In this document: piece by piece, positions 21,413 to 25,738 of the stretch
Layout: each line of letters starts with the position of its first letter
How positions within the stretch are numbered: the first letter of the stretch is position 1
Assembly (NCBI RefSeq): GCF_000006765.1
Contig: NC_002516.2
Origin: Pseudomonas aeruginosa PAO1
GTDB lineage: Bacteria; Pseudomonadota; Gammaproteobacteria; Pseudomonadales; Pseudomonadaceae
DNA: 64,000 nucleotides
Strand: one strand, 5' to 3'
Translations under genes and position numbers: made by a program
The notes under the pieces: model-generated
The model's database searches: none
The model's input: only the letters and a program-made list of their open reading frames with translations
What the model was told of the DNA's origin: nothing

Positions 21413-24124
21413 TCAGAACCACTGGCCGAAGCGGCGGATGTAGAGGGTCTTCATGGTCTGCGCGGTGACGCAGTAGCAGAGCAGCGTGCCCACCAGCCAG
21501 GGGAAGTACTCCCACGGCAGCGGCTGCAGGCCGACCACCGCTCCCAGCGGCGAGAACGGCACGTAGATGCCCAGCGCCATCACCAGCCCGGTCATCAGCA
21601 TCACCGGCAGCGCCGCGGTGCTCTGGATGAAGGGAATCTTCTGGGTACGCAGCATGTGCACCACCAGGGTCTGCGAGAGCAGGCCCTCGATGAACCAGCC
21701 GGACTGGAACAGCGACTGCATTTCCGGGCTGTTGGCGGCGAACACGAACCACATCAGCGCGTAGGTGGTGATGTCGAAGATCGACGAGGTCGGGCCGATC
21801 CAGACCATGAAGCGGCCGATGTTCTTCGAGTCCCACTTGCGCGGCTTGGCGAGGAATTCCTTGTCCATCTTGTCCCACGGCAGCGACAGCTGGGAGATGT
21901 CGTACATCAGGTTCTGCAGCAGCAGGTGGATCGCCAGCATCGGCAGGAAGGGGATGAAGGCGCTGGCCACCAGTACCGAGAACACGTTGCCGAAGTTGGA
22001 GCTGGCAGTCATGTTCAGGTACTTCATGATGTTGCCGAAGGTCTCGCGGCCCTTGATAACGCCCTCCTCCAGGACCATCAGGCTTTTTTCCAGGAGGATG
22101 ATGTCGGCCGATTCCTTGGCGATGTCGGTGCCGCTGTCCACCGAGATGCCGACATCGGCATCTCGCAGCGCGGGGGCGTCGTTGATGCCGTCGCCGAGGA
22201 AGCCAACGGTGTGTCCGTTGCCCTGCAGGGCCTTGAGCACCCGCGACTTCTGCAGCGGCGTCAGCTTGGCGAACACCGTGCGCTCCTCGGCCAGGCGTTG
22301 CAGGGTGGCATCGTCCATCAGGTCGATGTCGCGACCGAGCAGCGGCTCGCCGACGTCCAGGCCGACCTCGCGGCAGATCTTCGCGCTGACCACCGGGTTG
22401 TCGCCGGTGAGCACCTTCACTGCCACGCCGTTCTCGCGCAACGCGGCGATGGCCGGGCCGGCGGTTTCCTTCGGTGGATCGAGGAAGGTCAGCAGGCCGG
22501 CGATCACCAGGTCGCGCTCGTCGCTGGCGCCGTACTGGGCCTGGGACTCCGTGCGCGAGAGGCTGCGGGTGCCGAGCAGGAGCACGCGGAAGCCGTCGCG
22601 GTTGTATTGCTCGGCCAGCGCCAGCAGGGCCCGGCGGCGTTCCTCGTCGAGCGGCAGGTCGACACCGTCCTGGTGCACGCGGGTGGCGATCTCGAGCATT
22701 TCCTCGACCGCGCCCTTGCACACCAGCAGCTGTTCGCCGTCCTTGCCCTCGAGGATCACCGAGAGACGCCGACGGACGAAATCGAAGGGCAGTTCGTCGA
22801 CCTTGCGCCAGGCATCCGACGGCGTGATGCGCGGGTTCTGTTCGACGAAGGCGACCACCGCGCGGTCCATCAGGTTCTTCATCCCGGACTGGTGGAAGCT
22901 GTTCAGCCAGGCCATTTGCAGGACCCGGTCGCAGCGCCGGCCGGCAACGTCGACGTGATGCTCGAGGATGATCCGGTCCTGGGTCAGGGTGCCGGTCTTG
23001 TCGGTGCAGAGCACGTCCATGGCGCCGAAGTTCTGGATCGCGTTGAGGCGCTTGACCACCACCTTGCGCCGCGACATCGCCACCGCGCCCTTGGCCAGGT
23101 TGGCGCTGACGATCATCGGCAGCATTTCCGGGGTCAGGCCGACCGCCACGGCGAGAGCGAACATGAACGCCTCGGTCCAGTCGCCCTTGGTGAAACCGTT
23201 GATCAGCAGCACGATCGGCACCATCACCAGCATGAAGCGGATCAGCAGCCAACTGACGCTGTTCACCCCACGGTCGAAGGCGGTCTGCGCCCGCGAACCG
23301 ACGATGGAACGGGCCAGCGAACCGAAATAGGTGCGCGCACCGGTGGCAACCACCACCGCGGTGGCCGTGCCGCTGACCACGTTGGTGCCCATGAAGCAGA
23401 TGTTCGGCAGTTCGAGCAGGTCCTGCTGGTCGGCGGCGATCCGCTTGGCGGACTTCTCGCGGACCGCGCCGAGGGTGTCGTATTTCTCCACCGGCAGCGC
23501 CTCGCCGGTGAGTACGGCCTGGCTGATGAACAGGTCGCGCGATTCGATCAGGCGGATGTCGGCGGGGATCATGTCGCCGGCGGACAGGCGCACGATGTCG
23601 CCGACCACCAGTTCGCCCATGGGGATTTCCCGCAGCTCGCCGCGCATCCCGCGCTCGTCGCGGCGCAGCACGGTGGCGGTGTTCCGCACCATGGCCTTGA
23701 GCGCCTCGGCGGCCTTGCCCGAACGGTATTCCTGCCAGAAGCGCATCAGGCCGCTGACCAGGACCATGCAGAGGACGATGATGACGCCGGTGAGATCGGT
23801 TTCCTCACCGTCCTGCAGGGGCAGCCAGAAGTCGGTGAAGAAGCTGATCGCAGAGAGCGTCATCAGCACGTAGATGAAGGGGTTGTTGAACGCCTGCAGC
23901 AGTTGCACCAGGACGTGTGGCGGACGGTCGTGGGCCACTTCGTTGGGGCCGTCGGCGTGCAGCCGGGCGGCGGCCTCGGCCTGGTCGAGGCCGTCCTGGC
24001 GACCGCGGACATTGGTGAGGGTGGTTTCCAGGCTGTTCTGCGCTTCGCGGGCGGCGCGCATGGACAGTCGGTCGTTGCGGCGCTCGGTATCGAGCTGGGT
24101 ATTGCGTTGGGTCGCTACGCTCAT
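21413..24124 (-). CDS. mgtA: Mg2+-importing P-type ATPase
   Basis: 903 aa; TGEALP, PEMLP, DKTGTLT, KGAVEE, TGDN and GDGINDAPAL motifs; AGGAG SD. Confidence 0.97.
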   Translation of the reverse strand: MSVATQRNTQLDTERRNDRLSMRAAREAQNSLETTLTNVRGRQDGLDQAEAAARLHADGPNEVAHDRPPHVLVQLLQAFNNPFIYVLMTLSAISFFTDFWLPLQDGEETDLTGVIIVLCMVLVSGLMRFWQEYRSGKAAEALKAMVRNTATVLRRDERGMRGELREIPMGELVVGDIVRLSAGDMIPADIRLIESRDLFISQAVLTGEALPVEKYDTLGAVREKSAKRIAADQQDLLELPNICFMGTNVVSGTATAVVVATGARTYFGSLARSIVGSRAQTAFDRGVNSVSWLLIRFMLVMVPIVLLINGFTKGDWTEAFMFALAVAVGLTPEMLPMIVSANLAKGAVAMSRRKVVVKRLNAIQNFGAMDVLCTDKTGTLTQDRIILEHHVDVAGRRCDRVLQMAWLNSFHQSGMKNLMDRAVVAFVEQNPRITPSDAWRKVDELPFDFVRRRLSVILEGKDGEQLLVCKGAVEEMLEIATRVHQDGVDLPLDEERRRALLALAEQYNRDGFRVLLLGTRSLSRTESQAQYGASDERDLVIAGLLTFLDPPKETAGPAIAALRENGVAVKVLTGDNPVVSAKICREVGLDVGEPLLGRDIDLMDDATLQRLAEERTVFAKLTPLQKSRVLKALQGNGHTVGFLGDGINDAPALRDADVGISVDSGTDIAKESADIILLEKSLMVLEEGVIKGRETFGNIMKYLNMTASSNFGNVFSVLVASAFIPFLPMLAIHLLLQNLMYDISQLSLPWDKMDKEFLAKPRKWDSKNIGRFMVWIGPTSSIFDITTYALMWFVFAANSPEMQSLFQSGWFIEGLLSQTLVVHMLRTQKIPFIQSTAALPVMLMTGLVMALGIYVPFSPLGAVVGLQPLPWEYFPWLVGTLLCYCVTAQTMKTLYIRRFGQWF

Positions 24125-24176
24125 GACTCGGTCTCCTGTCGCGAGCTGCGCGACGGCGACACGAGTCGGTTGCCGG

Positions 24177-24311
24177 TCAGGTGACAGGCAAAGGCGTGCC
24201 GGGTCGCGATGTTCGCGATCGGTGGGAAGAATGTTCGGCTTGTCCGGGTGAGGCCCACTGCGCGCGGCCGCTCAGGCGGCACGCAGCAGGCCGACTTGGT
24301 GGTTCGTCCAT
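24177..24311 (-). CDS. Candidate mgtA leader peptide, 44 aa (MDEPPSRPAACRLSGRAQWASPGQAEHSSHRSRTSRPGTPLPVT)
   Basis: AAGGAG SD (24318-24323) 6 nt before ATG 24311; TGA at 24177-24179, 52 nt before the mgtA ATG. Translated by hand. Confidence 0.55.
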   Translation of the reverse strand: MDEPPSRPAACRLSGRAQWASPGQAEHSSHRSRTSRPGTPLPVT

Positions 24312-24350
24312 GGCAGGCTCCTTGTGCGAAGGGTTAGGCAGGAGAAAGGG

Positions 24351-24569
24351 TCAGCCGCGCATCGGGCGGCGACCGCTCTCAGGGTTCTCTTCGACCTGCG
24401 TCTCCAGGCGGCGATACTCCAGGCGACCGCCGGCCGGGTCGACACGCCAGGCGAGGCTCGCAGGATGGCCGTGGCCGGGAAGGATCGCGCCGGGGGACTG
24501 CGCGGCGCGCACGCGCATCTTCGCCACGAAGGCGGATACGCCGGGGGATACCGAATTCTCGAAGTTCAT
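24351..24569 (-). CDS. Small hypothetical protein, 72 aa, upstream of mgtA
   Basis: AGGTG SD upstream of ATG 24569; sequence MNFENSVSPG...WRVDPAGGRLEYRRL. Confidence 0.6.
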   Translation of the reverse strand: MNFENSVSPGVSAFVAKMRVRAAQSPGAILPGHGHPASLAWRVDPAGGRLEYRRLETQVEENPESGRRPMRG

Positions 24570-24615
24570 GACTCACCTGTACCCGGCGTGCCGGACACGG
24601 GTGAGAAGCAGTGGG

Positions 24616-24735
24616 TCAGCCCAGGATGCCGCTCAACCGACCGACCCGTTGCGGGTTCCGTCGTGCGTTGGTTTGGGTCATCGCACCAGCCGGCATCTGC
24701 TGGGCCGGGCGACGACTACTGGGAATACTGTCCAT
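24616..24735 (-). CDS. Candidate upstream ORF, 39 aa (MDSIPSSRRPAQQMP...)
   Basis: First ATG after the predicted TSS; weak GAAGAGAG SD. Confidence 0.3.
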   Translation of the reverse strand: MDSIPSSRRPAQQMPAGAMTQTNARRNPQRVGRLSGILG

Positions 24736-24784
24736 GGCTCTCTTCGTAGGGGGAAAGAAAGTGCCCGGCTCTGCGGGCGGGGGT

Positions 24785-24813
24785 TTTATAGACCTCTTGC
24801 CAGACGAGGTCAA
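24785..24813 (-). promoter_or_regulatory. sigma70 promoter of the mgtA unit with an internal inverted repeat
   Basis: TTGACC-N17-TATAAA on the minus strand; GACCTC-N9-GAGGTC at 24791-24811. Confidence 0.75.
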
Positions 24814-24898
24814 CCGAAAAAGCCGTTTCGTTCAGGCTTCTATGGAACATCGGAAAATTCCCGCAGGAGTCCGGCGAAAAGACACCGGCCAAAAGCGC

Positions 24899-25738
24899 TC
24901 AGGCGGAGATCAGTCCCGCCAGCCGTCGCGCCAGCGCCGGCACTTCGGAGGCCGGGTCGAGGCGCAGGCGAAAACGGGTCTGCAGGATGTCCAGCAGTTC
25001 CTCGACGTCGCGCAGTTGGCGCTGCAGCGTCTCGCCGTTGCCGGCGCGCTGGCCGAACAGCCCGTCGGCCAGGGTCAGGCGCAGGTCGCCCTCGGTTATG
25101 GCGGCCTTCAGGCCCTGGCGGAATACGCTGTGCGGGTGGGTCGAGGTGTACCAGTTGCGCGGGATGTAATCGATCCACAACTGCGGGCGCAGGTCGAAGC
25201 GGTACAGCGGCAGCCAGCCGCTGCGACCGCGCACGGCGCTTTCGTAGAGACCGGCGTGCGGGTCGACCAGGCGCACGCAATGCACCTGTCCGGCGTCCGC
25301 CTCGTCGCCCGGCAAAGGCAGTGCTCGCGGCGGATTGGCCGAGCCGAAGCCGACATCCACCAGGAACTCGCCCTCCGCCAGGTACAGACGCAGCATCAGA
25401 TGCGATTGCTGGGTCAGCGGCGCGTCGTCCGGGAGTCCCCAGCGTACCCGTGCCACCAGCAGTTCCAGCTCGTAGCCGAGGGCCAGCAGCAGGCGGGCGA
25501 ACAGCGAGTTGAGTTCGAAGCAATAACCGCCGCGGCTGCCCTCGACGACCTTGGCGAAAACCTTGTCGGCGTCGATCTCGATGGGACGGTCGAGCAGCAC
25601 GTCGAGGTTCTCGAAGGCGACCCGGCGCAGATGCGCGTCGATCAGTCGGTCGAGATTCGCCAGACTCGGCGGACCGGGATCGTCGATGCCGATATGGTGC
25701 AGGTAGGCATGGGTCTGCTCGGGCGTCAGCGGGGTCAT
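24899..25738 (-). CDS. nat: Arylamine N-acetyltransferase
   Basis: 279 aa; FENLDV, RGGYCFELN (catalytic Cys), HLML and VDVGFG (Cys-His-Asp triad). Confidence 0.95.
   Translation of the reverse strand: MTPLTPEQTHAYLHHIGIDDPGPPSLANLDRLIDAHLRRVAFENLDVLLDRPIEIDADKVFAKVVEGSRGGYCFELNSLFARLLLALGYELELLVARVRWGLPDDAPLTQQSHLMLRLYLAEGEFLVDVGFGSANPPRALPLPGDEADAGQVHCVRLVDPHAGLYESAVRGRSGWLPLYRFDLRPQLWIDYIPRNWYTSTHPHSVFRQGLKAAITEGDLRLTLADGLFGQRAGNGETLQRQLRDVEELLDILQTRFRLRLDPASEVPALARRLAGLISA

Follow-up and report, generated by a model that had tools for sequence, protein, structure and literature searches.

A conserved reading-frame start within a folded RNA leader suggests translation-based control of the Mg2+ pump gene mgtA in Pseudomonas aeruginosa

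MgtA lets Pseudomonas aeruginosa compete for Mg2+. In a 2024 study of the protein in this organism, the Mg2+ reporter was built on the mgtA leader of Salmonella. The question raised by the native locus is whether the P. aeruginosa gene possesses a translated leader of its own. In the 64,000-nucleotide (nt) stretch of P. aeruginosa PAO1 DNA that was analyzed (contig NC_002516.2, hereafter the window), an initial annotation had described, ahead of mgtA and absent from the open reading frame (ORF) track, a 44-codon ORF opened by AAGGAG-N6-ATG and ending 52 nt before the pump gene. All of these features are present in the sequence. The ORF, termed uORF2 (upstream ORF 2), is predicted by no gene caller; it specifies the peptide MDEPPSRPAACRLSGRAQWASPGQAEHSSHRSRTSRPGTPLPVT, with proline at residues 4, 5, 8, 22, 37, 40, and 42 (7 of 44), and its ATG lies 187 nt before mgtA, the gap between its stop codon and the mgtA ATG at position 24124 being exactly 52 nt. 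With moderate confidence, uORF2 is read here as a translated, cis-acting leader ORF in which the efficiency of the first elongation steps is coupled to folding of the leader and hence to mgtA expression.

Considered in P. aeruginosa alone, uORF2 is unremarkable, and the case for it is therefore made by comparison across genomes. The comparison set comprised 80 loci encoding relatives of the ATPase, one genome per species, and locus counts are among the matches listed (individual loci carry L numbers). In the 79 usable loci, the region 60–300 nt upstream of the ATPase start was searched for a Shine-Dalgarno (SD)-like sequence and an ATG followed by a codon for Asp or Glu and then one for an acidic residue, His, or Pro. 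SD, ATG, and [D/E] were found at the homologous position in 25 of the 79 loci, compared with 0–1 on the antisense strand and 0.3–1.1 in shuffled sequences; L080 must be discounted among the 25, as the match there is formed by the end of MgtC. The conserved start occurs in Pseudomonas, Serratia, a Neisseriaceae metagenome-assembled genome (MAG), a proteobacterial MAG, and a Desulfovibrio assembly. Its consensus is M-[DE]-[DEH]-x-P, and the nucleotides that encode it differ between taxa.

The N terminus of the peptide reads MDEPPSRPAA in P. aeruginosa, MDEPFSRPTA in Pseudomonas sp. BN417 (the closest relative outside the aeruginosa group), MEEASSRFAA or MDEASRRFAA in group B Pseudomonas, and MDEASSSPLRAS, MEEASSYPLREY, or MNTSSSSPLRAS in the P. 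fluorescens-like group C. Further afield, it is MDHPPS[RS]PAA in the proteobacterial MAG and the Desulfovibrio assembly, MDDDPRPLIA in the Neisseriaceae MAG, and MDGDPETLIA, MDEHPGAFII, MDDHPGF, or MEEHPGT in Serratia and its relatives. Likeness among these peptides is confined to the first ∼10 residues, total length ranging from 12 to 46 codons, and the best conserved feature outside a subgroup starting M-N-T-S-S is Asp or Glu at positions 2–3. GGAG at the SD position is kept in most Pseudomonas leaders. Apart from a few distant taxa, Pro4-Pro5 is confined to P. aeruginosa, with Ala-Ser or Ser-Ser at this place in most Pseudomonas and Pro-Phe in BN417. The initial annotation had let the SD, the position, and the N-terminal Pro-Pro carry its argument and had looked to conservation of SD, ATG, and Pro codons across Pseudomonas; the position is borne out and the SD and ATG are mostly kept, but the Pro codons are not.

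In P. gessardii and Pseudomonas sp. WMBT8 (L018 and L024), the SD has changed from GGAG to GGCG, the ATG has become GCG, and 16 nt of the 5′ arm of the terminal hairpin described below have been lost together, which indicates that these elements are lost as a unit and counts in favor of the proposed coupling. The degenerate leaders (L018:1316-1494 and L024:1317-1494) also contain an in-frame TAA, the ATPase gene being intact, and they represent natural “leader-less” variants. In L026, AAG replaces the uORF2 ATG. The placement of stop codons, conserved in the P1 loop in the P. fluorescens group and missing from 44–46 codons of frame in group B, likewise counts in favor of uORF2 as a translated leader ORF.

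The type of constraint acting on uORF2 was assessed as mean pairwise variability at each codon position, after the 14 long versions of the ORF had been aligned as nucleotides. For codons 2–10, variability at positions 1/2/3 was 0.16/0.12/0.34 in all 14 sequences and 0.06/0.06/0.28 in group B only, third-position variability thus being 2–5 times that of the first and second positions. P. aeruginosa and BN417 differ only synonymously at codons 3, 4, and 8, with Pro5 replaced by Phe. The corresponding values for codons 11–46 in all 14 sequences were 0.39/0.35/0.44, and frame-shifting indels between lineages cause shared nucleotide blocks to be read as NRSLTCGSTYF... in some and as KSIACLRLDIH... 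in others. A comparison with the sister species P. paraeruginosa revealed the same division: the ∼85 nt from the SD to the end of the first leader hairpin (P1) are 100% identical, the adjoining PA4826 protein being only 79% identical, and the five substitutions in codons 22–29 are all non-synonymous (P>S, Q>P, H>P, S>Y, and S>F). Given that codons 2–10 are coding-like and codons 11–44 show no constraint on the peptide, behavior typical of a translated element is, as judged from these alignments, limited to the initiation site and the first ∼10 codons, and the open frame of the remaining RNA is incidental. The later PGTPLP, which had been cited as evidence, lies in this remainder and so in a part of the ORF that lacks peptide-level constraint; it no longer supports the case. 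An alternative leader, a 53-aa ORF beginning with GTG (24282..24121), was rejected because the GTG is not kept even in BN417, which has GCG there.

The leader that surrounds this start is folded (z = −3.9, better than all shuffles), and the order of its elements, namely SD and ATG, hairpin P1, spacer, P2, P3, and terminal hairpin T (Table 1), is kept throughout Pseudomonas. In every clade, the base of P1 is placed at +19/+20 relative to the first base of the start codon, and in alignment A1 97% of its cells are paired, with compensatory changes from U-A to C-G at two pairs. All five substitutions relative to P. paraeruginosa fall in the spacer and none introduces a G; this C-rich segment may represent a Rho entry site. 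Because the window leader contains no hairpin followed by a U tract, and hence no intrinsic terminator, Rho-dependent control is plausible.

The 3′ part of the leader can be drawn in two ways. P2 can form a local hairpin or can pair with the side of hairpin T that carries the mgtA SD, and both arrangements are supported by covariation. In a 25-sequence alignment, the local structure was paired in 91.6% of cells with 12 compensatory pairs, compared with ∼35% of cells and 3–5 compensatory pairs in register-shifted controls. In the nested alternative, the P2 5′ arm pairs with the SD-proximal arm of T and the P2 3′ arm with the 5′ arm of T, and this form was paired in 93.7% of cells, also with 12 compensatory pairs. 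Helices unique to the local or to the nested form each show covariation of their own, so the P2-P3-T domain appears from these alignments to be bistable; the mgtA SD is paired in both conformations. Between clades, hairpin T covaries from GTGTG../..CACAC to CTCG.GTC/GAC.CGAG. A further pairing between a P1 arm and downstream sequence, noticed by eye as AGCGAA/UUCGCU in group B and GCGGGC/GCUCGC in group C, was dropped, as it has no equivalent in the window.

A covariance model of the P2-P3-T domain (R1), whose training set included the window sequence, scored the window at 62.3 bits (E ∼ 1e-15, as a training member) directly before the ATPase start. Among sequences not used in training, R1 placed the domain directly before the ATPase start in Pseudomonas loci at 106–110 bits and in P. 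paraeruginosa (L083) at 55.5 bits, and it scored 20–43 bits in ten loci from Rahnella, Ewingella, Enterobacter, and Rouxiella. R1 gave no match in Serratia, L064, L065, or L079. L065 and L079 have the leader peptides nearest to that of P. aeruginosa (MDHPPS[RS]PAA), yet a different 3′ RNA domain.

A conserved start inside a conserved folded leader is probably a translation-based switch like mgtL, the leader ORF of the enterobacterial mgtA gene, and the following sequence of events is proposed. Ribosomes would start at the strong SD and would have to polymerize M-D-E-P-P, while the leading edge of the ribosome reaches P1, the base of which lies 19–20 nt after the AUG as in the mgtL geometry. 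A ribosome usually covers ∼12–15 nt beyond the P site on the downstream side (a figure cited in PMC3641672), from which it would follow that a ribosome at codons 3–5 is just reaching P1. The efficiency of passage over the first codons would then decide whether P1 folds, and after it the C-rich spacer and the bistable P2-P3-T domain; the resulting fold would set transcription into mgtA, its translation, or both. Translation of uORF2 is itself predicted from sequence comparison, and an effect on it of Mg2+, Pro-tRNA, or EF-P would be expected by analogy; Rho may be involved, and the regulatory sign may be either of two. A sign like that of mgtL, by which poor early elongation at low Mg2+ would turn mgtA on, is slightly favored on grounds of analogy, and the opposite sign, like that of mgtP in the Salmonella mgtCBR leader, is almost as likely.

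Several observations weigh against this interpretation of uORF2. A frame of at least 44 codons is open in 59% of dinucleotide-preserving shuffles of the leader (68% G+C DNA), and seven prolines in 43 residues correspond to P = 0.12 at the window CCN frequency of 9.8%, as the initial annotation had cautioned in placing the proline content near chance; Pro-Pro at residues 4–5 gives P ∼ 0.01 in a post hoc test. Many leaders of the P. fluorescens group start M-N-T-S-S, with neither an acidic residue nor Pro at positions 2–5. An AGT codon and the bases adjacent to it are invariant, wobble positions included, which implies constraint at the nucleotide level as well. The Enterobacterales recognized by R1 contain a P1-like hairpin and the P2-P3-T domain with no SD-ATG uORF2 before P1, and the RNA is accordingly more widespread than uORF2 and can exist alone. 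Folding was also constrained by forcing a ribosome footprint to be single-stranded at chosen codons and then at every third codon (L032-34 and L077, in which the SD is non-canonical, were left out); with a ribosome at any uORF2 codon, the predicted accessibility of the mgtA SD in the window stayed at 0.40, and no consistent change emerged across the leaders that were folded. Given this lack of an equilibrium effect, any coupling in P. aeruginosa would be kinetic or would act through Rho. Rfam model RF01056 (Magnesium-II) had no match in window positions 23900-24900 at E ≤ 10. Finally, no Ribo-seq, proteomic, or efp/earP data on uORF2 were found in the literature, and mgtA is absent from the P. 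aeruginosa 3′-end mapping paper and its 26 supplementary files.

The alternative that survives best, doubtful as it is, would give the leader the opposite sign. Translation of all 44 codons would unfold P2 and P3, shield the spacer from Rho, and end just ahead of hairpin T; uORF2 translation would be needed for mgtA, and pausing at Pro37, Pro40, and Pro42 would raise its expression. The precedent is mgtP, of which start-codon and early-stop mutants lower expression and in which a ribosome on the left arm of the stem frees a sequestered ribosome-binding site (RBS) (PMC3641672). In groups A and B, the ORF ends 5–10 nt before hairpin T, the group B end being a cluster with stops in all three frames, and in the AT-richer group B the frame is open for 44–46 codons, with no in-frame stops versus one to five in each other frame, an openness that survives a frame-shifting indel and is mildly unusual (P ∼ 0.2 per sequence or lineage). 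Placing a ribosome at codons 27–30 lifted the predicted SD accessibility from ∼0.4 to 0.7–0.8 in several leaders of group B, and the two substitutions at Pro40 and Pro42 relative to P. paraeruginosa are both synonymous. No such change in accessibility is predicted for P. aeruginosa, however, where the open frame is in any case expected by chance. Codons 11–44 lack peptide-level constraint, other clades do not keep the 3′ Pro codons, and in the P. fluorescens group (group C) the ORF consists of 12 codons with a conserved stop within the P1 loop, yet the same 3′ domain follows.

A switch made of RNA only, in which P1, the spacer, and the P2-P3-T domain would sense Mg2+ or bind a factor and would act by RBS occlusion or by exposure of a Rho site, the SD-ATG being dispensable or minor, is considered unlikely. 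It is a serious rival nonetheless because the scaffold exists without uORF2 in Enterobacterales, where R1 detects the domain. Covariation for both conformations of the 3′ domain, the invariant AGT wobble positions, and the indifference of the window's predicted SD accessibility to ribosome position are all consistent with it, and Mg2+ responses at the RNA level have been reported for both the mgtA and the mgtCBR leader of Salmonella (PMC3641672). Such a switch would leave unexplained why the SD, the ATG, and the acidic codons are kept across distant taxa in different nucleotides, why codons 2–10 show a third-position bias, why the 12-codon versions have a conserved stop in the P1 loop, and why SD, ATG, and part of hairpin T disappeared jointly in L018 and L024.

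That uORF2 is a chance ORF in GC-rich non-coding DNA, with no function of its own, is very improbable. The frequency of open frames in shuffles and the unexceptional proline content would allow it, but the SD, the ATG, and the first codons stand at a constant position relative to P1 across genera, in a segment that is identical between two species whose neighboring gene has diverged. Least credible of all is a trans-acting 44-aa small protein, for which the strong SD and the intact frame in P. aeruginosa, P. paraeruginosa, and BN417 would speak, but which is contradicted by a length of 12–46 codons, by C-terminal two-thirds that are read in different frames in different lineages, by the exclusively non-synonymous substitutions in codons 22–29, and by the lack of relatives, the peptide having no Pfam or NCBIfam match at E ≤ 1 (a search without a positive control, as the 17-aa MgtL falls below its 20-residue minimum) and one partial, unnamed match and no other among 5.8 billion protein clusters.

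The initial annotation placed the leader peptide upstream of mgtA; uORF2 is not at the 5′ end of the transcript but sits inside an operon, after PA4826. The order of elements is a conserved promoter, a further leader ORF (uORF1), PA4826, uORF2, and mgtA, and their coordinates are given in Table 1.

Table 1. Coordinates of the leader and operon elements in the window, listed from upstream to downstream
Feature	Position	Strand	Basis or remark
Promoter-like hexamers TTGACC (24813-24808), N17, TATAAA (24790-24785)	24813..24785	minus	17-locus alignment
5′ stem-loop, then U-rich tract	24778..24763	minus	Directly after the hexamers; flagged terminator-like
uORF1 (MDSIPSSRRPAQQ..., 39 codons)	24735..24616	minus	∼165 nt upstream of PA4826
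PA4826-like gene, 72 aa	24569..24351	minus	Just upstream of uORF2; frame intact in 33 loci
uORF2 SD, AAGGAG	24323-24318	minus	6-nt spacer to ATG
uORF2, 44 codons + stop, starts MDEPPSRPAA	24311..24177	minus	ATG at 24311, TGA ending at 24177
Hairpin P1 (GGCCTGCTGCGTGCCGCC ... GGCCGCGCGCAGTGGGCC)	24292..24252	minus	Folding and covariation; base at +19 from A of ATG
Spacer, predicted unstructured, C-rich, G-poor	24251..24223	minus	Unpaired in minimum free energy structures
P2, best conserved block (CCGATCGCG AACAT CGCGACCCGG; consensus CCGATCGCG...CGCGnCyCGG)	24222..24199	minus	Alignment
P3 hairpin, holds the uORF2 stop (24179-24177)	24198..24160	minus	∼90% of cells paired, compensatory pairs
Terminal hairpin T, encloses the mgtA SD AGGAG (24137-24133) and ends at the mgtA ATG	24167..24125	minus	Folding and covariation
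mgtA (PA4825-type), 903 aa, Mg2+ P-type ATPase, MgtB-like clade	24124..21413	minus	NCBIfam NF011702, 1749 bits

The 72-aa ORF, a “hypothetical protein” in the P. aeruginosa annotation, is probably PA4826. Transposon insertions in PA4826 of P. aeruginosa phenocopy loss of mgtA whereas a clean deletion does not, and Mg2+ supplementation shifts expression of PA4824–PA4826 together (PMC11218974). Insertions that are polar on mgtA and a joint Mg2+ response point to one operon, transcribed from upstream of PA4826, and this Mg2+ response also counts in favor of the main reading of uORF2. Published work also assigns PA4824 to the mgtA operon and reports a separate requirement for it in fitness at low Mg2+ (PMC11218974); the PA4824-type ORF of 263 aa downstream of mgtA (21330-20539, minus strand) belongs to no Pfam or NCBIfam family. 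The 72-aa product of PA4826 likewise falls outside the families of both collections, and Rfam, Pfam, and NCBIfam contain no entry for the RNA domain, uORF1, or the PA4826-like family. PA4826-like ORFs of 72–98 aa (MNFKSTVMPGVRAF...WRVxPxxGxL...DSQDPxSR...) nevertheless occupy the matching place in 33 loci of Pseudomonas and Enterobacterales and bear a coding signature, with variability of 0.37/0.32/0.52 at the three codon positions and 8359 synonymous differences in frame versus 3369 and 2249 in the shifted frames.

uORF1 is present in all 33 of the loci with a PA4826-like gene, in Pseudomonas and Enterobacterales alike, reading MDTVS[S/R]RC... in most species and comprising 27–39 codons. Its first codons are near-invariant (variability of 0.09/0.14/0.23 for codons 2–9) and are followed by a covarying hairpin, and the N-terminal pattern M-D-x-x-[S/P]-S-R is common to uORF1 and uORF2. 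An acidic-Pro-x-Ser-Arg motif was also noticed in three units of the operon, as EENPESGRR near the PA4826 C terminus (24392-24366), MDEPPSRP in uORF2, and MDSIPSSRRP in uORF1; in relatives, the PA4826 motif is DDSQDPPSRR or SDSEEPQSRF, and the nucleotides underlying the three copies are not obviously similar. In L029, L030, L031, L035, L037-L040, L043, and L056, the RNA scaffold lies ∼220 nt before the ATPase and is accompanied by uORF1 and a PA4826-like gene, with no uORF2.

At the head of the operon, TTGAC[A/T]-N17-TA[A/G]ATT followed by a hairpin and a U tract is common to 17 aligned loci from two orders (Pseudomonas and Enterobacterales). The −10 hexamer of the window ends in A, and a simple promoter scan consequently made no call. 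The quality of the −35 hexamer would be in keeping with a large share of the regulation being exerted after initiation; upstream of it, inspection by eye only revealed no obvious direct repeat of a PhoP box. The 5′ stem-loop with its U-rich tail could be a stabilizing 5′-terminal hairpin or a very early attenuator.

These features permit a tentative extension, by which the PA4826-mgtA operon would constitute an undescribed two-tier translation-sensing leader system in Pseudomonas and several Enterobacterales that reads failure of early elongation at low Mg2+ twice. Each uORF would combine a conserved N-terminal nascent peptide (M-D-T-V-S-S-R... in uORF1 and M-D-E-[A/P]-[S/P]-S-R... in uORF2) with a hairpin ∼20 nt downstream, and with a near-consensus and apparently constitutive promoter most Mg2+ control of the pump would lie after transcription initiation. 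Were this extension correct, it would add a new RNA family and, in the PA4826-like protein, a new component of Mg2+ homeostasis.

The initial annotation called the pump gene mgtA, but orthology to enterobacterial MgtA is not upheld. At 70% identity to the MgtB-type ATPase encoded in an mgtC-mgtB-mgtR-mgtU island, versus 54% to E. coli MgtA, the window protein is nearer to MgtB. The extra mgtC-mgtB-mgtR-mgtU island is present in 1 of 5426 complete E. coli genomes (strain Z1323MEC0001). ATPases 72–79% identical to the P. aeruginosa protein were encountered in Alphaproteobacteria, Mycolicibacterium, and a Desulfovibrio assembly (L007, L014, L042, L044-L049, L058, L061, and L079), a scatter that, on protein identity, points to extensive horizontal transfer of the pump or, for some assemblies, to contamination.

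Of the known leaders, E. coli mgtL is the closest in plan. Its annotated record gives 17 codons starting 194 nt before mgtA, and the curated structure of RF01056 (E. coli) places the AUG in a UGG...CCA mini-hairpin, with the next hairpin (UCUCC/GGAGA) at +20 and UUAAAAC after it. uORF2 is likewise a short, SD-led ORF ∼190 nt before a Mg2+ P-type ATPase (187 versus 194 nt); it has acidic residues and proline among its first five residues (M-D-E-P-P in P. aeruginosa versus M-E-P-D-P), a motif that is not kept in most other Pseudomonas (MEEAS, MDEAS, and MNTSS). The start codon is flanked by UGG...CCA in P. aeruginosa too, the next hairpin stands at +19/+20 in Pseudomonas, UUAAAAC follows the hairpin in group B, and neither leader has an intrinsic terminator. 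The two differ in length (44 codons in P. aeruginosa versus 17), in the P2-P3-T domain and the long terminal hairpin that buries the mgtA SD in Pseudomonas, in the MgtB-like ATPase that is served, in the location of uORF2 inside an operon after PA4826 with a second uORF upstream, and in Pro codons that are not conserved within Pseudomonas.

This layout was not matched by detectable homology. In an 11-locus scan, RF01056 and RF02887, the model of the Salmonella mgtCBR leader, gave no match at the gathering score in L001, L002, L008, L041, L064, L065, or L079, and the group B (L002) and Serratia (L041) leaders gave no match to either model at E ≤ 10; the M-box (ykoK, RF00380) was not among the E ≤ 10 matches in window positions 23900-24900. 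The controls were positive (125.8 bits for the E. coli mgtL leader with RF01056 and 89.3 bits for L082 with RF02887), and permissive scans returned only noise, such as mgtE-motif at 10.7 bits against a threshold of 200. The description of the leader as MgtL-like therefore stands for its layout (SD, position at ∼190 nt, acidic and Pro-containing start, and hairpin at +19/+20) and fails as a statement of homology: as far as these searches reach, uORF2 is analogous to mgtL by layout and is not a detectable member of the mgtL family.

A likeness in mechanism class, as distinct from sequence family, is to intrinsic ribosome destabilization. Mg2+ sensing by MgtL has been attributed to destabilization of the ribosome on the N-terminal EPDP at low Mg2+, with a toeprint corresponding to Pro3 in the P site, the trigger being acidic residues early in the nascent chain, alone or interleaved with Pro (PMC11282234); Rho-dependent termination takes place downstream, and the ABC-F factor EttA counteracts the destabilization (PMC11282234; PMC12856214). 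uORF2 shares Asp or Glu at positions 2–3, and an acidic N terminus with a hairpin at +20 fits this view of Mg2+ sensing, from which the M-N-T-S-S subgroup, lacking acidic residues, departs. The natural variants MDEPP, MEEAS, and MNTSS thus offer a comparison of Mg2+-sensing N termini.

The mgtM/mgtP leader of Salmonella mgtCBR (RF02887) resembles the Pseudomonas operon in having tandem short ORFs with Pro-containing peptides ahead of an MgtB-type ATPase and a downstream RBS in a stem-loop, and there the position of the ribosome on the uORF has been proposed to choose between alternative structures (PMC3641672). In contrast, the Pseudomonas operon has no RF02887 match and no mgtC, and a gene for a PA4826-like protein separates its two uORFs; moreover, the prolines of mgtP are at codons 10–12, near the base of the stem, whereas the conserved part of uORF2 is codons 1–10, with acidic residues at 2–3. 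With trpL and hisL attenuation, uORF2 would share a short translated ORF on which ribosome occupancy selects RNA helices, but it contains neither a conserved run of cognate regulatory codons nor an intrinsic terminator.

No description of uORF2, uORF1, or the RNA domain was found in the searchable literature, in which early mgtL work on non-enteric homologues is incompletely covered. What is probably new is a leader-ORF-plus-RNA element for a Mg2+ pump that is laid out like mgtL and departs from it in its RNA, its genomic setting, and its non-conserved prolines. A native leader that combines a conserved ORF with a bistable RNA provides an easily mutated handle on the coupling of Mg2+ to mgtA in P. 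aeruginosa. The E. coli and Pseudomonas leaders have in common not the prolines but an acidic N terminus, in a position where a hairpin at +20 confronts the ribosome.

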